In this document: positions 9,122 to 45,535 of the stretch, piece by piece
Layout of the letters: each line of letters starts with the position of its first letter
How positions within the stretch are numbered: position 1 is the stretch's first letter
Assembly (NCBI GenBank): GCA_048013815.1
Contig: CM106586.1
Location: 24,180,001-24,244,000 of the forward strand
Origin: Setoptus koraiensis
Lineage: Eukaryota > Animalia > Arthropoda
DNA length: 64,000 bases
Reading direction: 5' to 3'
The notes under the pieces: generated by a model
What the model was told of the DNA's origin: nothing
Seen by the model: the letters and a program-made list of their open reading frames with translations, nothing else
Databases searched by the model: none
Translations under genes and position numbers: made by a program

Positions 9122-10188
9122 CTTACAGAAAGAAAAACAAGATTTGAAAAACTTATTTTGGACAATGAGTTATCTTAGTGATTTCAAAGTCTACCTGGCA
9201 AATCAACTCGAAATTTCTTTTTCATTGAGTAATCAATTTGGCGATTGAAATACTATATCTACTCTTGAATATATATTGTGGCGATCAGCTAAGATAAGAT
9301 ATCAAGATAAGGTTGAGAAAGATTGCATCTCAGAGGAAAGTAACAAAATATATATTCTAATACGTATCTAACAACCAGCGTGACATTATGTTGGGCCGGT
9401 AGATAACGGAGCAAGATTCAAAAAAAAACTCTAACTACATCGTAAAATGTAAATACTAGTGAGGTACTCGCAATATTGACTCAAAAGTCAATATCTTCCA
9501 ACGTAGTGTTTTGGATTCAAAAGGCGCCTATTCGCCACAAAATAGTTGAAATAAATAGTTCATTCATTGGATTTTTTCAAGTTTTGTACTTCCAGATCAA
9601 CCAGCCACTTCATGAACGAATCGTGATTGCTCGAATTGAATAACAAATGCGACACGCATCAACACCATGTTACGAATCTACCGATTCATTGGAAAGAGTA
9701 ATTGGGTTCTGGGAAGTGTGACTTGATGAATTTCTCTAGTATTTAGAGTCAACTAGTAACTGACAATCTAACCCTCTATAATGTTTCTGAAGACCCACAA
9801 TTTGTTGGTATCTGAACTGTATTTTGTGGCGAAAGCCTAGACCAGGCCATAGCTCACAGATATTCGCGTATCAAATTGAATAATAGTTATAGTAATAGAA
9901 TAGTGATAATAGTAATAGTTCGATGACAAGATGCATTTCTATAGGCTGCATCGAAATGACCTGCGAATGGATAATCTTTCGTCGCCACACAGTCTGTGTT
10001 TCGAACCTCGAAATTCGAAGCGTGTGTGTCAGTATTTTTGAATGTGCATTTGTGTATTGGCTGTGCCACTCAGCGCCCTCTATCAAAAGTATTGAAAGAG
10101 CCACAACCTCAACCCAATCACATGTTGTGCATTGCTGAATATATCAACGTATTCCAGTTTTACGATTTGCAACTTTATTTCATTTAAG

Positions 10189-11688
10189 ATGCATGAAAAT
10201 ATGGAAGAACCCGTGGAAATTGAATATATTTACGAGAAGCCCGAGGAGAACGACCTCTTCCTCCAGTTTGCCAATGTTTTCGAGAGGTTCTCGCTGCCCA
10301 GTAAAGAGGACCAATCTAAAGAGAACAATGTGGACAATGAGGAGAAGGGGACCGCGGTTACCATTCACCAGGATGAAGATAAAGTTCCGACCCAACCACG
10401 AGTGTCAAAGAAAGAGCTAAAAACTCTCTCTCGTATGACAGTTGCCCAACTCAAACAAAAAGTCGATAGGTCAGAGCTAGTGGAAATGCACGATGTTACA
10501 GCAAAGGATCCATTATTGTTGTTACATTTAAAATCGGCTAAGAACTCGGTACCAGTACCGAAACATTGGTGCTTCAAACGCAAATATTTGCAAGGCAAAA
10601 GAGGCTACGAAAAACCTCCGTTTGTGCTGCCTGATTTTATTAGGAGGACAGGTATCATGGAAATGAGACAAGCAGTGCAAGAGAAGGATGATAACAAGAC
10701 ACTTAAATCGAAGATGCGTGAAAAGATTCGCCCTAAAATGGGAAAGATTGAAATAGATTATCAAAAATTACATGATGCATTCTTCAAGTGGCAAGTCAAA
10801 CCTCGGCTTACCATTCATGGGGATCTTTATTATGAGGGCAAAGAATTCGAGACTAGGCTTAAAGAGAAGAAACCTGGAGAGCTCAGCTCAGAACTACGAG
10901 CCGCGTTAGGGATGCCCACAGGTCCAAATGCCAATAAATGCCCACCTCCATGGCTCATAGCCATGCAACGTTATGGGCCGCCTCCGTCATATCCGCATCT
11001 TAGAATTCCTGGTCTCAATTGTCCCATACCTGAAGGATGCTCATTTGGTTACCATGCCGGTGGATGGGGAAAACCACCAGTTGATGAACTTGGTCGACCT
11101 CTCTATGGTGATGTCTTCGGTTTATCGCAGGACGATAATGACCATTTGAGAGAAGAAACTGTAGATACTACTCTTTGGGGCGAGCTAGAATCTGATGAAG
11201 AAGAAGACGATCAAGACATGGAGGAAGAAGATATGATAGAAGAGAAGGTTCAAATGATCAAACCACCGTTGGACACCAAGTCCGAGGACACCGGCGGACT
11301 TGTCACTCCTTTGGGGGCAATACCAAGTGGTATCGTATCCGTGCCTGCGGGTGTTCAAACTCCAGATCTTATAGAACTTCGTAAACGAACGGCCAAGATA
11401 GAACAAGAGATGGAAATGGGAGAAAATCCATCACTCTATAAGTTACTTCCTGAAAGGAAGGTGGAAGAATTTGGCATGGAGAGGATGCCATCTGCTTTCA
11501 TATACGACACTAGTGCACTGAAAAAGCAAGACAATACATCAATGAAGGACCCCGAATCAAATAGGCATGATGTCGATCTACAGAAAGACGATATCACTGT
11601 AAAAAGTCCCAAGAGATTGCCTCAGAAAGGTAGTGAAAAAGTCAAGAAATTAGAAGAGATGAAGGAGAAAGAGTTTAAGAAATTCTGA
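10189..11688 (+). CDS. SF3B2: Splicing factor 3B subunit 2 (SAP145/Cus1), intronless over this span, N-terminally shortened
   Basis: Motifs VEMHDVTAKDP, VPVPKHWCFKRKYLQGKRG, IDYQKLHDAFFKWQ, the PSP domain PPPWLIAMQRYGPPPSYP, GYHAGGWGKPPVDE, and C-terminal KEFKKF. The start is placed at ATG 10189; the ORF-track start at 10132 is a non-ATG codon. Confidence 0.95.
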   Translation: MHENMEEPVEIEYIYEKPEENDLFLQFANVFERFSLPSKEDQSKENNVDNEEKGTAVTIHQDEDKVPTQPRVSKKELKTLSRMTVAQLKQKVDRSELVEMHDVTAKDPLLLLHLKSAKNSVPVPKHWCFKRKYLQGKRGYEKPPFVLPDFIRRTGIMEMRQAVQEKDDNKTLKSKMREKIRPKMGKIEIDYQKLHDAFFKWQVKPRLTIHGDLYYEGKEFETRLKEKKPGELSSELRAALGMPTGPNANKCPPPWLIAMQRYGPPPSYPHLRIPGLNCPIPEGCSFGYHAGGWGKPPVDELGRPLYGDVFGLSQDDNDHLREETVDTTLWGELESDEEEDDQDMEEEDMIEEKVQMIKPPLDTKSEDTGGLVTPLGAIPSGIVSVPAGVQTPDLIELRKRTAKIEQEMEMGENPSLYKLLPERKVEEFGMERMPSAFIYDTSALKKQDNTSMKDPESNRHDVDLQKDDITVKSPKRLPQKGSEKVKKLEEMKEKEFKKF

Positions 11689-11853
11689 TGAGACCAAAGC
11701 TTAGATTGATGAAAAAGTTGTACATAAGATTCAAGGCAGTCCATCTCAACCTATTATTGCCGATAATATTTGAGTTCCTAGATGTAGGATGGTTATTAAT
11801 TTTGTATTGATGTATGCCTTTATTCACAACATATAGGCTATTGAGTAGGTTAA

Positions 11854-13032
11854 TCATAAGTTATACTTCAACAACATTATAAACATGGATATGGAAATCT
11901 GCAAATAAAGGAGATGCTTAGTCAATATTTTCTCGTGCTTTGGCCCGAACCAGCACAACCAAACGTTGATGAGAGTGAAATTTGAACACCTGTAGTTTTG
12001 TTGTCCCCTATTTCCAGTAAATCTTTCCATCTTTGTGAGTTTTAAGTTTGCGAAAACGGTTATGACGAATCGACCTAGGGGATTCAAATCGGTCCATTTG
12101 AATTCGAAAGTGGACGGGTTCAATAGACCACTTTGTTGGTCGAATCTGGGCAACCGATGTCTAGGGCATGGTACAATCTTGCTAATCTGGGGAAATGATA
12201 ATAAAAAGTTCAATATTTGCGGTACGGCAAACAACAGAATCTCCTCAGAGAAATGTCCCAGAATCCCAACAACGGCTAGCGTCATTCCGGCGAAATAACA
12301 AAATGAATCACCAACAAATACTCTGGCAGGATACCAGTTATAATAGAGTAGTGCCATACTACAACTTGTAAATGGAAGGAGAAGTTTGATAGAGAAAAGA
12401 TGTAATCCATCCACTTGGATCGATAATTCTAATATATTATAGATTATCACGGACATTGCGATGACGACACTTTGACCAGATTCCAATCCATTGATGCCAG
12501 CATAAATATTGATGGCATTTGTGCAGAACACTACATACATCAGCATGTATATATAGTAGAACAGTCCTAGGTCTAAATGAGCATTTAAATTTAGATAATT
12601 CCTCAAGAATGAGGGTACCAGAATTGTAGTATTATCATGATAGTTATAGTAATAAACCGATAACAGAGGTATAGAGGCAGCAAAAGGTAACATCAGCTTG
12701 TATCTCCATTTAAGATCTTTGCAATCATCAATAAAACCCAACATGAGCATGGCAAATATAGATGTCAGGGCGGCTAAATTACTATATTTGTCTTTGAAGT
12801 GCTCATTTGAATAATATGGTCTTATCAAGAAGCATAATATGAAAGTCACTAAATAACAGGATCCTACGACAATACCCAAAGATTCGGGTATCCTAGGTTT
12901 TCCTTTTTTGGCCAAGTCCATTCCATAAAGAGCTGTGTTTTTCAAAAAATAATTAGCAACCGGTGGTATAAAGGCCCACGTGAGTGCACCGCCCATCAGG
13001 AATGATCCTACACATATCCATAATTCATTCAT
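11854..13032 (-). CDS. DPAGT1: UDP-GlcNAc:dolichyl-phosphate GlcNAc-1-phosphate transferase (ALG7), intronless
   Basis: Multi-pass membrane protein with GFIDDCKDL, NAINIYAGINGLE, FVGDSFCY and PCPRHRLP motifs. The first in-frame ATG after the GTG start is at 13032 (MNELW). Confidence 0.95.
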   Translation of the reverse strand: MNELWICVGSFLMGGALTWAFIPPVANYFLKNTALYGMDLAKKGKPRIPESLGIVVGSCYLVTFILCFLIRPYYSNEHFKDKYSNLAALTSIFAMLMLGFIDDCKDLKWRYKLMLPFAASIPLLSVYYYNYHDNTTILVPSFLRNYLNLNAHLDLGLFYYIYMLMYVVFCTNAINIYAGINGLESGQSVVIAMSVIIYNILELSIQVDGLHLFSIKLLLPFTSCSMALLYYNWYPARVFVGDSFCYFAGMTLAVVGILGHFSEEILLFAVPQILNFLLSFPQISKIVPCPRHRLPRFDQQSGLLNPSTFEFKWTDLNPLGRFVITVFANLKLTKMERFTGNRGQQNYRCSNFTLINVWLCWFGPKHEKILTKHLLYLQISISMFIMLLKYNL

Positions 13033-13622
13033 TCTTCGTTGATTCCAAAAATAAATAAATATAATAATAATACAGTAGAAACGGTGAGTTTCTTTTGCGT
13101 GAACCACACGGAATGCACCAATGAACGTCATTTGAGCTACGAGAAGCATTTGTTCGAGCACTGCGAAAGCATGCGAACAAATTTCACAGTAGACATATGA
13201 CGATTAATTGCTAACAAGTTGCATGACTGCATGCGCCAGTTTGATCTCTCTTTCTCCATGTCAGAATTTCAATTATTATTAATGAAATAAAGACGACGAT
13301 CGATTACCATTTGAAAGATTTTACATCAGCCTAAATGGACATGGGTCGTCGTCTATTGCTGAGGTCCCATCGCTATTTAATAATTCAAAGGGAAATATTT
13401 GAGGTAGTGATGCTAGATATCTAGGCTGCTTGGAGAGTAATGTGTATAGCCTGAGCTTCAGGAACCAACACTTGCTCGGGACAGCTTTCTAGAAAAAGTG
13501 ATTTGTAGAATGGGGATAAGCATAGTCACACTGAAAAGCAGAGGAATATTCGAGAATTGCACCAAACCATTGATGTTTGAATGAAGCAAACTGATATACT
13601 AAACTCCGAGAAAATGGTCGAG

Positions 13623-13649: not shown

Positions 13650-13783
13650 GTTAGCCTACCCACCCGTTTAATTCACTTAACTTTACTGAACTAGCAGACA
13701 TTCCTTCATTTTGAATGAGAATGACAATGAGACATGTGCATTTATGTTGGATGCAGTTTAGGTCTATAGCTGTGATGGGACTT

Positions 13784-15633
13784 TCACTTAGACCCATCAT
13801 CATCTTCATCCTGATATTCGGACACGTATAGTGATTTGTCAATCACTCTTGGTATAGCCTTGATCTCCGTTCCCAACTCTTGTTCTACACGATGAAGGTT
13901 GAATCTATCTTCGTAAGTGATCAAGTTAATGGCTATACCGAGGTGACCAAATCTTCCAGAACGACCAATTCTATGGAGATAAGTTTCGGACATCTTTGGA
14001 AAGTCAAAATTTATGACAACGTTAACTGCTTGAATGTCTATACCACGAGTGAAAAGGTCTGTGAGGGATATATAATTGTAAATTTGTAGGTTAGTGGACA
14101 AGTGCGAGATCGATGAAATGTGTTCGTAACTATCGGATCGTAAAAATAATCATACCTGAACAGACTAGATTTCTGCATAGACCGTTGCGGAAATCGTGGA
14201 AGACACGGTTACGATGAGGTTGTGACATCTTGGCGTGGATATAGTAGCAGGAGTAACCTAACTCCGCAATCTTCTTAGCGAGTAACTCGACGCGTTGCGT
14301 TGAATTGCAAAATATTATCGATTGGTTGATTTGTAACTTTGAGAATAATGTGTTCAGGCAATGCACCTTCTGCTTTTCTTGAACATAAGCGTAGTATTGT
14401 GTGACTCCTTTCAAGGTCAATTCTTCCATTAAGTTGATTTCGTATGGTCTCTTGGTACTGAGGTGCTTGTCCTGAAGATATTATCGGGAAGGAGTGATAT
14501 AAAGTGGAAAAGGTGATGTCAGGTGAATTGATGTTTTTAGAAACAATGGATAAAACAAGTAGATTGAATCGAAACAGATGAATAGGTAAACACTCATACA
14601 AAGTGGTAAGGTAGAGTATCGTCAGTGCCGACCTCATGCCGGTGTCTGTAGCAGAACTGGTTAAGATTATAATCATCGTATTTCTCCCATGTCATCTGTG
14701 GACAAACTAGTTCTGAAGTGGGCGCGCTGGAGTCTGATACTTACCACAAATTGACGCACTGTAAGAGGGAAAGTAGCTGAGAATAGAAGTATCTGCCTGT
14801 CAGGGGGCAGTAGCGATATTACATTGTCCAACATTCCGGAAAAATCTTGAGATAGCAATTTATCAGCCTGTAGTGTGAAGATTTAACATAATTTAGTCAG
14901 AATTAGAAACTCGAACATCGCTTCGCTATGCTGTCACGGGCTCAATCGAATGGTAGAGACTCACTTCATCTAGGACGAGCATTTTACAATTGTTCATCTG
15001 AGCAACTTTCTTTTCCATAAGATCTAGAATACGACCGGGGGTGGCTATGATAACGTGAACTGTGGAGGAATTTGTGAAGATTTTTAAGATGAATACGAGG
15101 GTGCAGGAGGAGAGACAATGACAACATTTAGAGAATGTTTTAAACCGGGGATGGATAGCGAAAACAACTGTCTATGAGTATGACAACTAACCGTTGTCGT
15201 AGATGCGCATGATATCATCTTTGAGATTTGTTCCACCAGTTGTGGCCATCACTCTAGCTCCGAGATGCTTTGACAACTCAATACATATCTGACTGGTTTG
15301 GAGAGCCAATTCCCTGGTAGGTACAATAATGAGAGCTTGAATGTCATTGATAGATGTGTTTATCTTCTGTAGAATGGGGATAACGTAAGCACCGGTTTTA
15401 CCGGTACCGTTCTTGGCTCGAGCTAATACATCTTGGCCCAATAATGAAATAGGTATACTGGCCTCTTGAATGGGTGATGGCTTTTCCCAGCCTTTCTCAA
15501 ATATACCCATTAGTAACTCGCGCTTCAAACAGAGATCTTCAAATTCTTGGCCTTTGGTGGCCGTGACGTCGGTGGTTTTTTTACGCCTATCCTTGGGCGG
15601 CATTTTAACAAGCGATCTTAATTGTACGTCCAT
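13784..15633 (-). CDS. DDX6: DEAD-box RNA helicase DDX6/Me31B/Dhh1; 5 exons (15633-15192, 15059-14965, 14867-14745, 14471-14156, 14058-13784), 416 aa
   Basis: Motifs [32 protein letters not shown] (DEAD across a splice junction), SAT, RGID and HRIGRSGR. Four canonical GT-AG introns give a 1251-nt frame. Confidence 0.96.
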
Positions 15634-15973
15634 TTTAATCTAGTGATATTTTTTATATATTGTTGTTGCTGAATGTGTTATATATTTTATATTACTATAA
15701 TTAATCTTTGATTACAATGGGTCTCGTCACTAAGATTTTCTGGATACAATTATGTGTCTCTTGTACAATATTATACTGGTTGTGATCTGATTTCTTTTTC
15801 TTGTTCTTCTTGTTCTTGTATATAATAATTATCATTTATCTATTGGATAATTCTTTAGATCGCCAATCGTAGAATGCTTCAATATACTGCGGCGTTACAT
15901 TTATATTATGTGTGCATGTGTGCGATGCAGTTAGCGACTATGTTAAATATACACAAAAACACATACTTTTATA

Positions 15974-16114
15974 TAGGGTGATTAAATCAATCCACCCAAT
16001 TCTACAGCGACTATGCTAGCATGGCCTTTGTAGCGCATTTCTTGCACAGAAAAATGTATTGTTTGTTAGGCACAGCATGGCCGAAATCATGAACGTTTGC
16101 TTGGAAACACCCTA
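15974..16114. mobile_element. Possible degenerate Tc1/mariner-type MITE within the palindrome arm (mirror copy about 17312-17452)
   Basis: Termini TAGGGTG...CACCCTA with TA on the left flank; the mirror copy ends in CAGGGTG, a common mariner-like terminus. TIR identity beyond 7-10 nt is poor. Confidence 0.3.
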
Positions 16115-16331
16115 TGTTCAAAGAGAGCACACACTCTCTATATACGTCTGTCTCATTTCCTCTTTTATCTAAGCTTCAACAATGTTATATTTGCTCATTT
16201 CTAGTCTACAACTCGTAACAGCAGCCAAAAAGCAGCGATCAACAAAAATGCTTCAATTCTCAATACACACATATACTCGCGTACACACACACATTGCCTC
16301 GTATGCATGCGATGTTTGTCCGTACAAGCTA

Positions 16332-16402
16332 TGCTGGATCGCGGTTTACGTCCCGCGGATTGTGCCGTTCCGCGTCGTTTCCGCGGCTGCCGCGATCCAG
16401 CA
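16332..16402. other. GC-rich branched hairpin
   Basis: Perfect 13-bp stem TGCTGGATCGCGG (16332-16344) / CCGCGATCCAGCA (16390-16402) enclosing further CCGCGG(A)/TCCGCGG inverted motifs. Confidence 0.7.
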
Positions 16403-16419
16403 CACTACAAAGCACACTA

Positions 16420-16729
16420 AAGAGGTGGGCACTGATACCCGTGGCGTATACCCGACCCGGTTGAAATTTCTTTCCACAAACCCAACCCGTACCCGGCCAG
16501 TGAAAAAAAATTGACAAATTCGACGGGAGTGCACAGATGGTCAATGAGAACCCGTGAGTCTCAAAGCCCCGAGGATTTCTCTGCGGATGTTTACGAAATT
16601 TTGGAATTCTGGAATTCGATCCGTGCACCTTCCCTGGCTAGGATCATCAATAAACAGCCGACCCAAACCCTTACATGTGGGGTATCCGCGCGAATCGCCC
16701 CAGCGGAGAGGCATCCGTGCCTACCTCTA
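16420..16729. mobile_element. Non-autonomous hAT-like element (MITE, about 310 bp) in the palindrome spacer
   Basis: TIRs AGAGGTGGGCAC (16421-16432) / GTGCCTACCTCT (16717-16728). Degenerate 8-bp target-site duplication gcacacta / ccacactt (6/8). ACCCG/ACCCA subterminal repeats at both ends. Confidence 0.6.
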
Positions 16730-17653
16730 CCACACTTGCAAAGAATAGAAAGAGTAAAGAAAGTTTACACACACACACACAGACACGCTAACCAATGGAT
16801 GTGATCGAATTCGGGTGCAAACTGTATGGTGACCAAGTACTTTTGAGTTCTGCGCGGCAATAAGCATGCATTGAATTTATCAAAGTGCGCACTGAGCCTA
16901 AACTTGATTCTTTTTCGCCTTCAATGCGCTTACTAAATGAACTTTTTGTGCCGAAAAATTGTTATTGCCGCACAGAGCTCAAACGTATACCTGGTCACCC
17001 TTCATCATGTAGGCTGCATGGTGGTAAGCGACACTGTCGGACAGTGCACGAAAAGGTGCGCCCTCTAGTTTCGCACAATCAGAAAGGTTTTCGGACTGCC
17101 GCACTTTCACATATTGCGTGCATACGAGGCAAAGAGTCTGTGTACGCGAGTATATGTGTGTATTGAGAATTGAAGCATTTTTGTTGATCGCTGCTTTTTG
17201 GCTGCTGTTACGAGTTGTAGACTAGAAATGAGCAAATATAACATTGTTGAAGCTTAGATAAAAGAGGAAATGAGACAGACGTATATAGAGAGTGTGTGCT
17301 CTCTTTGAACATAGGGTGTTTCCAAGCAAACGTTCATGATTTCGGCCATGCTGTGCCTAACAAACAATACATTTTTCTGTGCAAGAAATGCGCTACAAAG
17401 GCCATGTTAGCATAGTCGCTGTAGAATTGGGTGGATTGATTTAATCACCCTGTTCATAAATATGTGTTCTTGTTCTTAAAGAAGCATTCTAGTTTGGTAA
17501 TCAAGAGGATTATCTAATAGTTCAAAGATAATTATTATAGGCAAACAACGTGAAAGAGGAATAAGGTCAGAATCAGCATAACACTGCGCAGGAGTCACGC
17601 AATCAGAGAACACGTGCATCAACAACAATATACAAAATTATTATAAGGTTGAA

Positions 17654-18175
17654 ATGGACGCGCAATTAAGATCACTAGTTAAATTGCATCTTATTATAAC
17701 ACGCTCTATATCCTCCACCAGCGTCTTGAATGGCACCCCTAAAAGAAGAGTCACAATTGAAAGAAGATTAAGGAGGAGATACGGTGACCAAAATATGCCT
17801 ACTGGCAGTCTCTTATTGCACTCCAAAAATAATATATTAGTATGCGGTAAATGCGGATCATATCACGAGGCCCATACCATTTGTAATAACTGTTACGATT
17901 TGATTAGAAAGGAGACACTGCCTATCATCGAGTCAATCAGAGAAGCACAAGGTTCCGATGCCATCACAAAAGAGGTCCTGTTGAGGTATAAAGGCGATCA
18001 AGTGGACCACTCACAGTATGCCAATCTGCAAATTGTTGAGACAGAAAGAACCAGACCATTGTGGTTCACAGATAATCTCTTAAAAAGGAAAGCTCTACCC
18101 GGCACCAATACCGAAACGGACCCGGCTGTTAGTGCAAATGACAACCTTATAAAAGTTATACCGGATAATAAATGA
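17654..18175 (+). CDS. MRPL32: Mitochondrial ribosomal protein bL32m, intronless
   Basis: R/S/L-rich presequence-like N-terminus, PKRRVTIERRLRRR, and the zinc site CGKCGSYHEAHTICNNC, followed by the typical EVLLRYKG and RPLWF segments. Confidence 0.88.
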   Translation: MDAQLRSLVKLHLIITRSISSTSVLNGTPKRRVTIERRLRRRYGDQNMPTGSLLLHSKNNILVCGKCGSYHEAHTICNNCYDLIRKETLPIIESIREAQGSDAITKEVLLRYKGDQVDHSQYANLQIVETERTRPLWFTDNLLKRKALPGTNTETDPAVSANDNLIKVIPDNK

Positions 18176-18259
18176 ATTGAGTTCATTGCAGTAGTCATAA
18201 TCATACAATTTGCTATTTTTTCCAGATGGTACTCTTCTGTTTTTTATATTTGCAGTTAG

Positions 18260-19093
18260 TTAGGTGGCTTTTGGAGTCTTGACTTCTTTTTTAGTAATAC
18301 TCTCCATGATCATGCAGATGGTCTTGTGCTTCGACACTAACTCATCCAGAGAAAAGAAGCCACTATCAGTCTTGATGGCTTTCACATGACCTGCTATCAG
18401 TGCGTCCGCGGCCGTCCAAGATTTTTCATCACTGGGATTGAAGTTTCTACGTTGCACAAGATCAGACTCTAGTTTGTTAAGAAATGACTCAAAATCGCTC
18501 AATATATTACTCTTTTCATCTGTGAATTTTTTCTGCATCTCTACTCTTTTAAACCAAAATAATATATGATTGAGCGGCCAGGCTAATTTGTAAGTATATC
18601 TGGGAAATGTGTACTCTTGAAGAGTCTGTTTCTGACACCAGCAACTGAACATTTCTACTTTTAAAAAGTTTGATTCTATCCAATCAATATAAGCTCGAGA
18701 TTCCGCATCCAAAATTCGAGGATTAAAATTCTCCAAAGAAACTTTTTGTTGCTTTGTAGCTGATTTCGTTTGAGAATGCAAATAAGTTGCAACCTCTTCA
18801 AAACCGCACAATATCCTGGTTCCTCGCCTAACCAGCGGCAATTTCCCATTAGTTGACATGTATTCTGCATTCTTCACCTTCATGAGAACACATTCGATGT
18901 CTGATATCTTGAATAAGGCATTAACACTCTCACTACTGGCTAGGTCATACAATAATATTTGAGATGGCAGTGGCTGATATAATTCGCATTTGTCCGTCCA
19001 TTGCTCGTGGTTGTCGGGTAAACACTGAAGAATATTTCTCACTTGTGTGTCAACTCGTTCCTGTTTACTGCTAGCAGAGTCATCATTTTCCAT
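18260..19093 (-). CDS. MTX2: Metaxin-2 (SAM complex, GST-like fold), intronless, with a chimeric N-terminus
   Basis: LYQPLPSQILL, NAEYMSTNGKLP and RYTYKLAWPLNHIL match metaxin-2 motifs (LYQQLKGEQILL, NAEYMSPSGKVP, YPWPLNHIL). Confidence 0.88.
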   Translation of the reverse strand: MENDDSASSKQERVDTQVRNILQCLPDNHEQWTDKCELYQPLPSQILLYDLASSESVNALFKISDIECVLMKVKNAEYMSTNGKLPLVRRGTRILCGFEEVATYLHSQTKSATKQQKVSLENFNPRILDAESRAYIDWIESNFLKVEMFSCWCQKQTLQEYTFPRYTYKLAWPLNHILFWFKRVEMQKKFTDEKSNILSDFESFLNKLESDLVQRRNFNPSDEKSWTAADALIAGHVKAIKTDSGFFSLDELVSKHKTICMIMESITKKEVKTPKAT

Positions 19094-19766
19094 AATTATC
19101 CAATAATGGTAATTCTAATAATTAATGAATACTTTGATCAATCGAAAGTCGAATTGCCTAAAGGACGAAATATAAATGGGTGGGAAATGGCTCCCTGAGC
19201 GCGGTGTGCATTCGCACAAAAATAATTTTAGTAGTATAGCATGCACAGAGAGCATGTGACACAGATTGTGATTGTATTTCAGAAACATAGGGAAAGCACC
19301 ACAGTCAAACATCTACATAAATCATTATTAGAATCAAAATGTTACCATTATTTTTTATTTTACTAGATATTCAATAAAACCGCTGGACGTGAGACCTTTC
19401 AAATGCTGATGTCTTTTTAATCAGATTGATATTAGGTTAAGTATTAGTAGTAGTAGTATTGGAATTGCGGATTCAGAATTATTTCGAATAATTATGGAAA
19501 ATGATGATTCTTCCGACGTTGTACAGGACCACATTACAATCAATGGAACCGTCAATAATATATCTGTTAGTCAGACTAATATGGATAGCTCATCTTCATC
19601 CTATGTGAGAGAATTCAATTCTTTGTTTAAGCCTCTGAATCCTGTCCAATTGCGGGATAGAGCATTGGCAGGAGGCTTGAGAAATTCCAAATTTAGAAGT
19701 TTATGTTGGAGATATTTTCTTCAATGTCTCCCGGACAACTATGAGCAATGGCTGGAAAAATGTGAA
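18983..19766. repeat. Diverged, internally deleted inverted duplication joining the MTX2 and TBC1D5 5' ends
   Basis: 19099-19076 (rc) vs 19488-19511 match at 23/24 nt across both ATGs. 19039-18983 (rc) vs 19710-19766 match at 45/57 nt. 19122-19100 (rc, tattagaattaccattatt) vs about 19326-19352 match apart from a short insertion. Confidence 0.9.
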
Positions 19767-44087: not shown

Positions 44088-44445
44088 AAGATTACTAATT
44101 AAATCGCATCTTATCATAACACGCTCTATATCCTCCACTTGCGTTTCGAAAGACACCTCAAAAAGAAGAGTCACAGATGAAAGAAAAATTAGGAGGAGAT
44201 ACGGTGACCAAAACGTGCCTACTGGCAGCCTCTTATTGCACTCCAAAGATAATATATTAGTATGCGGATCATATCACGAGGCCCATACCATTTGTAATAA
44301 CTGTTACGATTTGATTAGAAAGGAGACACTGCCTATCATCGAGTCAATCAGAGAAGCAAAAGAGATACTGTTACAAAAGAGGTCCTGTTGAGGTATAAAG
44401 GTAAACAAGTGGACCACTCACGGACTCTAGTCATAATCATACAAT
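44088..44445 (+). pseudogene. Degraded copy of MRPL32 (and its 3' flank)
   Basis: Aligns to 17668-about 18210. It lacks the ATG, has a 9-nt deletion removing KCG from the CGKC zinc motif, carries frameshifts, and has a deletion of about 170 bp at the 3' end. Confidence 0.92.
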
Positions 44446-44489
44446 TTGCTATTATGCCAGATGATGCTTTTCGTTTTTTCATATTTTCA

Positions 44490-44960
44490 GTTAGTTAGTT
44501 TAGAGTCTAGTTTCTGACACCAACAACTAAACATTTCCCCTTTAAAAATATTTGATTCTATCCAATAAGCTCGAGATTCCGCATCCAAAATGCGAGGATT
44601 AAAATTCCCCGAAGAAACTTTTTGTTGCTTCGTAGCTGATTTCGTTTGAGAAAGTAAAAAAGTTGCAACCTCTTCAAAACCGCACAATGTCGTGGTTCCT
44701 TATCTAACCAGCGGCAATTTCCCATTAGTTGACATGTATTCTGCATTCTTCACCTTCATGAGAACACATTCGATGTCTGATATCTTGAATGAGGCATTAC
44801 TACTCTCACTACTGGCCGGGTCACACAATAATATTTGAGATGGCAGTGGCTGATATAATTCGCATTGCTCGTGGTTGTCGAATAAACCGAATCGAAGAAT
44901 ATTTCTCACTTGTATGTCAACTGGTTCCTGTATACTGCTAGCAGAGTCATCATTTTCCAT
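44490..44960 (-). pseudogene. Degraded copy of metaxin-2
   Basis: Aligns to 18260-19093 (MENDDSASS...NAEYMSTNGKLPLVR*), with a premature stop, frameshifts, and a deletion of about 350 bp of the 3' half. Confidence 0.92.
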
Positions 44961-45000
44961 AATTATCTAATGATGGTACTGTCGATAATTAATTAATAAT

Positions 45001-45535
45001 TAACTTGGACCCATCATCAGCTTCATGCTGATATTCGGACACGTTTAGTGATTTATTAATCACTCTTGGTATATCCTTAATCCGTTGCCAGCTCTTTTTG
45101 GAATAATTTCGGATAACTCTTTTTGGGACATGTTTGGAAAGTCAAAGTTCATGACAATATTGACTGCTCGAATGTCTATAGCATTATGGCTGAGTGAGAA
45201 GGTCTGTTAGTGATATACAAAATGTAAAATGTAAAATATAAATTTGTAAGTTAGTGGTGATGACAAGTGTGACATCTAGGGACGGCTCCCGTTTGCTCGT
45301 GACACTCGATTATCATACCTGAACAGACGAGATTTGTGCATGGGCCTTTGCGGAAATGAAGCAAGACACAGTCACAATGAGCTTGTGACATGTTTGCGTG
45401 GATATATTAATTATATATCCACGCGTGATAGGTAGTAGCAGGAGTAACATATGTCCGCTTGTTGTGGTGATGCAATCGAGAAGGAGTGATGTAAAGTGGA
45501 AAAGGTGAATAGAGACAACGGATAAATTGAATCAT
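45001..45535 (-). pseudogene. Degraded copy of the DDX6 3' portion (last two exons, intron 4 and part of intron 3)
   Basis: Aligns to 13784-about 14572, with many indels. Retained intron sequence shows a DNA-level duplication rather than retroposition. Confidence 0.88.

Follow-up and report, generated by a model that had tools for sequence, protein, structure and literature searches.

Two unrelated genes that lie head to head in the mite Setoptus koraiensis, one encoding the cytoplasmic RNA helicase DDX6 and the other the mitochondrial ribosomal protein MRPL32, begin on opposite strands with nearly the same 11 codons, and the question that this locus raises is which gene gave its start to the other, by what route, and what that start now does in the recipient. 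The window that we analysed is a stretch of 64,000 nucleotides (nt) (assembly GCA_048013815.1, contig CM106586.1, positions 24,180,001 to 24,244,000); all coordinates are positions in it, with the palindrome at 15600–17687 and the gene pair DDX6 (minus strand) and MRPL32 (plus strand) at its ends. DDX6 starts at 15633 on the minus strand (atg gac gta caa tta aga tcg ctt gtt aaa atg) and MRPL32 at 17654 on the plus strand (atg gac gcg caa tta aga tca cta gtt aaa ttg). Over these codons 28/33 nt and 9/11 residues are alike, the amino acid changes being V3A and M11L; an earlier note on this DNA had given the same match, and rereading the sequence returned its figures. We put at roughly 80% the probability that a lineage-specific fold-back copy of the DDX6 5′ end took the place of MRPL32's own front part, with later gene conversion between the two copies and with the chimeric N-terminus acting as an import signal.

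The palindrome and its transcripts

The two ATGs are the outer tips of a 2.09-kb palindrome. The earlier note had placed the likeness at 15601–17686 and had traced it upstream of both starts; the three motifs that it quoted are all present, inverted and collinear, and the interval proves to be one palindrome, whose arms run further inward than was described there. The features of the locus are as follows.

15192..15928, minus strand: DDX6 exon 1, covered by spliced RNA contigs of runs X7 and X8; the skipped introns have CT..AC ends, which are GT..AG on the minus strand
15600..15880, no strand: left outer arm (DDX6 leader and 11 codons), 71–80% identical, with indels, to inverted 17481–17687
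15601..15633, minus strand: DDX6 codons 1–11, the original copy; same start in orthologues, in-frame TAG 9 nt ahead of the ATG
15966..15975, minus strand: DDX6 TATA box, minus-strand TATATAAAAG, some 40 nt upstream of 15928, where the furthest RNA contig ends; putative promoter function
15975..16287, no strand: left 313-nt core, presumed upstream promoter region of DDX6; one mismatch against 17139–17451
16288..16318, no strand: diverged inner end of the left arm; 7 of its 31 positions mismatch the right arm
16319..17107, no strand: unique centre (spacer) with two repeat-like inserts; 16751–16822 conserved in the same orientation in L015, a contig from a related species
17108..17138, no strand: diverged inner end of the right arm, the copied one, placed by the arm alignment
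17139..17451, no strand: right 313-nt core, presumed upstream promoter region now serving MRPL32, by its match to the left core
17455..17462, plus strand: degenerate TATA-like element CATAAATA, aligned with the DDX6 TATA position; putative function
17481..17687, no strand: right outer arm, the MRPL32 leader and codons 1–11, DDX6-derived; similarity on the MRPL32 side ends at 17687/17688
17654..18175, plus strand: MRPL32 (bL32m) coding sequence, 173 codons, single exon; codons 1–11 (17654–17686) DDX6-derived
44088..44421, plus strand: decayed and truncated paralogue of MRPL32 with 87.6% identity to its parent, starting at the equivalent of 17668

The outermost arm match pairs 15600–15679 with 17609–17687 (80% over 80 nt, E 4e-13), and a second outer match pairs 15754–15880 with 17481–17598 (71% over 127 nt, E 6e-11). 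Between the outer and inner matches lies a stretch of about 60 nt that is present on the DDX6 side only. The inner match, 15953–16318 against 17108–17473, is 96.7% identical over 361 nt and contains the 313-nt core, in which a position-by-position count found 312/313 alike, with the sole mismatch at 16019. The flanks on either side of the core are about 77% identical or less between the arms; the outer flank has 5 differences in 9 positions, which coincide exactly with the TATA box. The centre, 789 nt long, is unique and G+C-richer. In the alignment, the junctions 16318/17108 and 17687/17688 are too diverged for microhomology to be read.

In a search of the 48.8-Mb assembly, which consists of two contigs of about 24 Mb each, neither arm had further copies; a right-arm query matched the two arms only, and dispersed relatives exist for two short pieces of the centre only. 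The match between the arms is therefore attributable neither to chance nor to a dispersed repeat. A scan of 15500–17800 against Rfam at E ≤ 1 gave no match, and RNA folding of the core (z-score +1.34) gave no hint of structured RNA. The inserts in the centre, at 16329–16402 and 16823–17004, are small and hairpin-like, have relatives at loci L007–L014 that are 77–93% identical, and are probably miniature transposons sitting in the spacer.

We compared positions 13700–19300 with four public runs: X7, X8 and X10, whose contigs leave out the DDX6 introns at GT..AG borders and which are therefore classed as RNA, and X4, which is DNA and comes from a different sample and a different study from the window genome. 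X4 yielded the pieces 15692–16004, 15975–16287, 16258–17168 and 17422–17880, of which the second is the core as a single 313-nt piece, with about twice the depth of its neighbours. This pattern is consistent with what is expected for a true palindrome in a short-read graph. The junction between the arm and MRPL32 is crossed by one RNA contig (17521–18146) and one DNA piece (17422–17880). The DDX6 RNA contigs are collinear with the genome over 15192–15928, which gives DDX6 a leader of at least 295 nt (15634–15928) covering the entire left outer arm, and their end lies about 40 nt downstream of the consensus TATA box at 15966–15975; the MRPL32 contig is collinear with the genome over the whole of 17521–18146. 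The RNA contigs contain no upstream spliced exon for either gene, and MRPL32 has no other ATG between 17462 and residue 47, which is already inside the conserved domain. The starts assumed by the earlier note therefore stand as far as the contigs go: these pass collinearly through both ATGs, with no alternative ATG or exon.

The DDX6 leader contains three upstream ATGs, one of which, at 15835, opens an upstream open reading frame (ORF) of 44 codons (15701–15835, minus strand). The corresponding ATG is gone from the MRPL32 leader, which has no upstream ATG after 17462. A low-depth X8 RNA contig, 17126–17383, lies on the right core and begins in sequence specific to the right arm; transcription thus occurs upstream of the presumed MRPL32 start.

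Direction of copying

DDX6 exon 1 carries the Pfam DEAD domain (E 9.5e-22) and, searched on its own, unjoined to later exons and with cluster members then listed, gave 2218 matches at E ≤ 1e-20, including proteins named DDX6/DHH1; the best named DDX6 match was a spider RNA helicase, 81% identical over exon 1. The helicase core and the close orthology to named DDX6 place the gene among the DDX6/Me31B/Dhh1 DEAD-box helicases. Its N-terminal extension is present in 20/23 of the related DDX6 exon-1 ORFs that we read. Thirteen of these 20 read MD(V/I/A)(Q/T/E)LRSx(V/T)KM and the others are shortened or looser variants, while the remaining three ORFs start at the conserved second Met. The pattern of the clade is MD(V/I/A)QLRSxVKMPPKD, with the extension directly ahead of PPKD, and more distant DDX6 forms, LNQLKLSVKMPPKD and DWKNQLKVPPKD, grade into the arthropod WKxKLKxPPKD motif. 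The resemblance to arthropod WKSKLKLPPKD that the earlier note had pointed out is thereby bridged by intermediates. Between the window and the relative L016, five synonymous codons and one conservative codon differ among the 11; given that the change is mostly synonymous, the 11-residue peptide is translated and under selection in DDX6. The leader motif CAACAACA.TATA is also found upstream of DDX6 in L016. We conclude from these comparisons that the motif ahead of PPKD is old and ancestral to DDX6. The suggestion that DDX6 might be partly mis-targeted found no support: its start is old and clade-wide, and is followed by Pro-Pro and a highly charged stretch.

MRPL32 matches Pfam Ribosomal_L32p over residues 29–81 (29.3 bits against a cut-off of 21.3), has a Cys-rich zinc-binding motif, CGKC...CNNC (CxxC...CxxC), at residues 64–80, and is, at 17654, the sole intact copy in the 48.8-Mb assembly. 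We sought its relatives by word-based searches, with the single protein and with a two-sequence profile, which gave the protein P0001 alone, and by an exhaustive search, which gave 216 homologues at E ≤ 0.001. The closest relative, P0001 (contig L015), is 77% identical and opens with 45 unrelated residues, and DNA orthology between L015 and the window MRPL32 begins only at 17723, which is codon 24. In the 14 closest of the 216 distant homologues, which were the ones read, the DDX6-like start is absent. The N-termini of the distant homologues are unrelated and too diverse for an ancestor to be reconstructed. The comparison of N-termini among relatives that the earlier note had proposed therefore has a clear outcome: the start is found in 20/23 of the DDX6 ORFs and not in the MRPL32 relatives that were read, and independent ancestry of the two starts was not seen.

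For the spacer between DDX6 and MRPL32, the relative available for comparison is L015, a single 2.8-kb contig in which the DDX6 side lies beyond the contig; its coding DNA is 79% identical to that of the window, as measured between the two species. No DDX6 contig from the L015 species was found in the search. The closest exon-1 ORF to DDX6, P0130 on contig L030, comes from another sample, and L030 has no similarity to the window upstream of DDX6 exon 1. In the relatives' contigs L016–L026 the genes upstream of DDX6 are SF3B2 or others, never MRPL32, and these contigs therefore do not display the ancestral spacer.

L015 has one core only, in the orientation of the DDX6 side, and no right arm. 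Its order is core, centre piece (16751–16822), about 420 nt unrelated to the window, and MRPL32, with orientations as in the window, and 16139–16323 is conserved in it at 85.6%. At the inner-arm sites where the two arms differ, L015 sides with the left (DDX6) arm at 6/7. In this single outgroup, one arm is thus absent and the arm that is kept is the ancestral one, as expected of a fold-back. We regard it as settled, on sequence grounds, that DDX6 was the donor and MRPL32 the recipient, and that the left arm is the original and the right arm the copy, because the DDX6 start is clade-wide, because MRPL32 in L015 has a different start and no right arm, and because L015 agrees with the left arm at 6/7 sites. 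The earlier note had favoured the same donor, with which the orthologue starts and the L015 comparison agree, and had proposed that the N-terminus of a cytoplasmic helicase now heads the MRPL32 precursor, as the palindrome and the orthologues also indicate. Its caveat that copying might have run from MRPL32 to DDX6 is now excluded by the clade-wide DDX6 start and the unique MRPL32 start.

Proposed mechanism and alternatives

We propose that, in the lineage of this species, an inverted copy of about 720 bp of the DDX6 5′ end was placed on the far side of the DDX6–MRPL32 spacer. The copied block would have comprised the upstream promoter region, the TATA box, the leader of about 300 nt, the ATG and the first 11 codons. 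After synthesis had passed through the DDX6 promoter region and the spacer, the growing strand could have folded back at the inner end of the arm, primed on itself with the spacer as a loop, and copied about 720 nt outward again as far as DDX6 codon 11. It would then have returned to MRPL32 in frame, discarding that gene's own promoter, leader and approximately the first 30 presequence codons. The layout is arm, centre and inverted arm, with the centre piece 16751–16822 collinear with L015 and uninverted, and it is from this layout that a fold-back template switch is inferred. DDX6-derived signals would now drive both transcription and translation of MRPL32.

Since then the outer arms have come to differ by 20–29%; the MRPL32 side lost one upstream ATG, and indels were gained. 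Between the arms the core shows 99.7% identity, whereas its conservation from one species to the other is only about 85%. Because this sharp-edged island of near-identity, lying within older arms, exceeds the conservation between species, recent gene conversion from arm to arm appears to be its simplest reading, and would have homogenised a 313-nt stretch of both promoter regions. A decayed copy of the gene cluster at 44088 already holds codons 6–11 of the chimeric start, and the fold-back would therefore be older than that duplication.

Several points weigh against this reading. The right arm is missing from one relative only, and secondary loss in L015 is formally possible. The template switch is read from the layout of the locus and from nothing else. 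The near-identity of the core may reflect strong selection instead of gene conversion. The RNA support consists of assembled contigs, and true 5′ ends, strand and initiation sites are beyond their reach; the transcription start sites therefore stay inferred. A second MRPL32 could lie on unassembled DNA, beyond the two contigs of about 24 Mb. Finally, the measures that bear on import, given below, are crude.

The first of these points has a fuller form, in which the palindrome predates the split from the L015 species, and L015 lost the right arm and gained a new MRPL32 start, with DDX6 still the donor. The identity of the outer arms (71–80%) is comparable to the 79% coding identity between the species, and there is one informative relative only. 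However, two events are then needed where one suffices, and the arms still align whereas non-coding DNA is otherwise unalignable between the species, which suggests that the arms are younger; we consider such a history improbable. We think an inversion by staggered breaks, with inverted duplicates left at its flanks, more doubtful still. Staggered breaks are known to yield inverted duplicates of single-copy DNA, and new partial genes arise in this way at Drosophila inversion breakpoints (Guillen and Ruiz 2012, PMC3355041). The window resembles those breakpoints in that single-copy DNA appears to have been inverted and duplicated in a rearrangement with new or altered genes at the junction, and gene order near DDX6 varies, SF3B2 adjoining the DDX6 5′ end in L016, L022 and L025. 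In Drosophila, however, the duplicates flank an inverted segment and the genes produced are extra ones, whereas here the segment between the arms is uninverted, the arms are 0.8 kb apart, and the copy would have replaced the front end of an existing essential gene. An inversion predicts an inverted middle, but 16751–16822 keeps the same orientation to the left core and to MRPL32 as in L015, and we rejected inversion on this ground.

We give equally little weight to the idea that the shared codons fall outside any working MRPL32, either because translation starts elsewhere or because the true gene is unassembled and this copy is decaying. The evidence for expression is at the level of transcripts, and the copy at 44 kb shows that the locus was duplicated earlier; but the ORF is intact, its L32 domain scores above the Pfam cut-off, it is 77% conserved with the relative, the gene is transcribed, the next Met (residue 47) lies within the conserved domain, and the 48.8 Mb hold no other intact copy. 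Least credible of all are the remaining explanations, namely that MRPL32 was the donor, that the arms are the inverted terminal repeats of a transposon, or that the match is due to chance or misassembly. MRPL32 as donor is at odds with a DDX6 start that is clade-wide and an MRPL32 start that is unique. The unique centre between long inverted arms gives the locus a superficial likeness to a fold-back element, but a transposon with long terminal inverted repeats, whether a fold-back element or a miniature inverted-repeat transposable element, was rejected since the arms match each other only and have no other copies in the 48.8 Mb searched. E-values of 4e-13 or lower speak against chance, and an independent DNA run and the RNA contigs back the assembly.

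The chimeric N-terminus and similar gene pairs

If a fold-back copy of the DDX6 5′ end did replace the front of MRPL32, the protein would open with a chimeric N-terminus of 11 DDX6 residues and about 16 of its own. We reasoned that, as the only intact MRPL32 in the assembly, the gene must function with this start. By crude measures, the first 27 residues carry a net charge of +2 and 7 Ser/Thr, lack proline and reach a hydrophobic moment of about 0.5, figures that make an import signal plausible and are no proof of one. The chimeric N-terminus most likely serves as a mitochondrial import signal that is afterwards trimmed off.

The m-AAA protease removes the presequence of MrpL32 without recognising any particular site, trimming the N-terminus until the folded Cys-rich domain is reached (Nolden 2005 and Bonn 2011, as reviewed in PMC8847149). 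The mite protein is like the MrpL32 of those studies in having an N-terminal extension ahead of a Cys-rich zinc-binding fold, and unlike it in that the extension is only about 27 residues long and is known here from sequence. Given site-unspecific trimming and the presence of the Cys-rich motif, we suggest that this is one reason why MRPL32 tolerates the swap of its N-terminus; the DDX6-derived residues are therefore predicted to be absent from mature MRPL32. The N-terminus of a cytoplasmic protein could, it seems, supply the first third of a mitochondrial presequence, which would fit loosely constrained import signals and trimming that is unspecific for sequence.

The locus belongs to a known class, that of chimeric 5′-end capture by partial duplication. 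Sdic and jingwei of Drosophila are chimeric genes in which a partial duplication captured a new promoter and N-terminus. As in those genes, the promoter, leader and first codons of one gene are fused to the body of another; unlike them, where the chimaeras are extra genes and the parents stay intact, the sole MRPL32 would have been remodelled in place by its head-to-head neighbour. Mitochondrial genes transferred to the nucleus in plants acquire presequences from other genes, the donors usually already encoding mitochondrial proteins. The likeness is that the N-terminal targeting region of a mitochondrial protein was duplicated from an unrelated gene, and the difference that here the donor would be a cytoplasmic RNA helicase supplying only the first 11 residues. 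In the palindromes of the human Y chromosome, near-identity between inverted arms is maintained by gene conversion. The window likewise has an island of near-identity between inverted arms, but it is a 313-nt tract in a shared promoter region rather than whole genes, and the arms are much more diverged. Read in this way, the locus would be an unusually complete natural 5′-end replacement: an essential single-copy gene would have exchanged its promoter, leader, start codon and first residues for those of an unrelated neighbour, and the sequence tells the donor from the recipient and gives the rough order of events and the likely mechanism. Its twin promoters would also make it possible to see in nature whether genes with identical upstream regions are forced into co-expression.

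The next head-to-head pair in the window consists of a metaxin-like gene (Tom37/GST_N_4) and a TBC-domain gene, whose start codons lie in regions at 19093 on the minus and 19494 on the plus strand. Both genes open with ATGGAAAATGATGA (MENDDS), and through a 58-nt inverted repeat, which pairs 18983–19040 with 19709–19766, they have a 19-residue block in common, 14/19 identical. This repeat is present in L015 too, and is therefore older than the DDX6/MRPL32 event. A third pair, which we take to be PAN3/Sirt1, lies at C2:18136681–18137300 (locus L050), about 6 Mb from the window. Both of its genes start MSQSSDE; the ATGs are 564 nt apart, with 20/21 nt identical, and sit within a 105-nt inverted repeat that is 70% identical (E 3e-8). 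Like DDX6/MRPL32, both pairs consist of unrelated divergent genes with the same first codons and an inverted repeat across the spacer; unlike it, their repeats are shorter, more decayed and without a near-identical core. A random sample of 18 stretches of 10 kb (180 kb) contained no local inverted repeat. These pairs hint at a local process, and we tentatively raise the possibility, which we hold to be somewhat less probable than its opposite, that fold-back renewal of 5′ ends is recurrent among head-to-head genes in this very compact mite genome (at least three pairs, two of them adjacent) and that gene conversion keeps the twin 313-nt cores of DDX6 and MRPL32 identical. Recurrence, if true, would raise the importance of the locus; cores kept identical would couple the transcription of a cytoplasmic helicase that represses mRNA to that of a protein of the mitochondrial ribosome.

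At 44088–45508 lies the decayed, permuted copy of the cluster, which contains MRPL32 from codon 6, the 5′ half of the metaxin-like gene and the 3′ exons of DDX6, at 70–88% identity to the parents. Its gene order could have arisen by tandem duplication with a later deletion or by way of a circular intermediate, and a joint in X4, from 19111 back to 13786, matches its junction. SF3B2 is directly upstream of DDX6 in the relatives L016, L022 and L025, in tandem or divergent orientation. Here it is found beyond the DDX6 3′ end (10132–11688, plus strand), with a glycosyltransferase family 4 gene in between (region 10132–13161). We conclude, by comparison of these gene orders, that repeated rearrangement has affected the surroundings of DDX6. 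The end of the 24.5-Mb contig is about 0.3 Mb away from the window.

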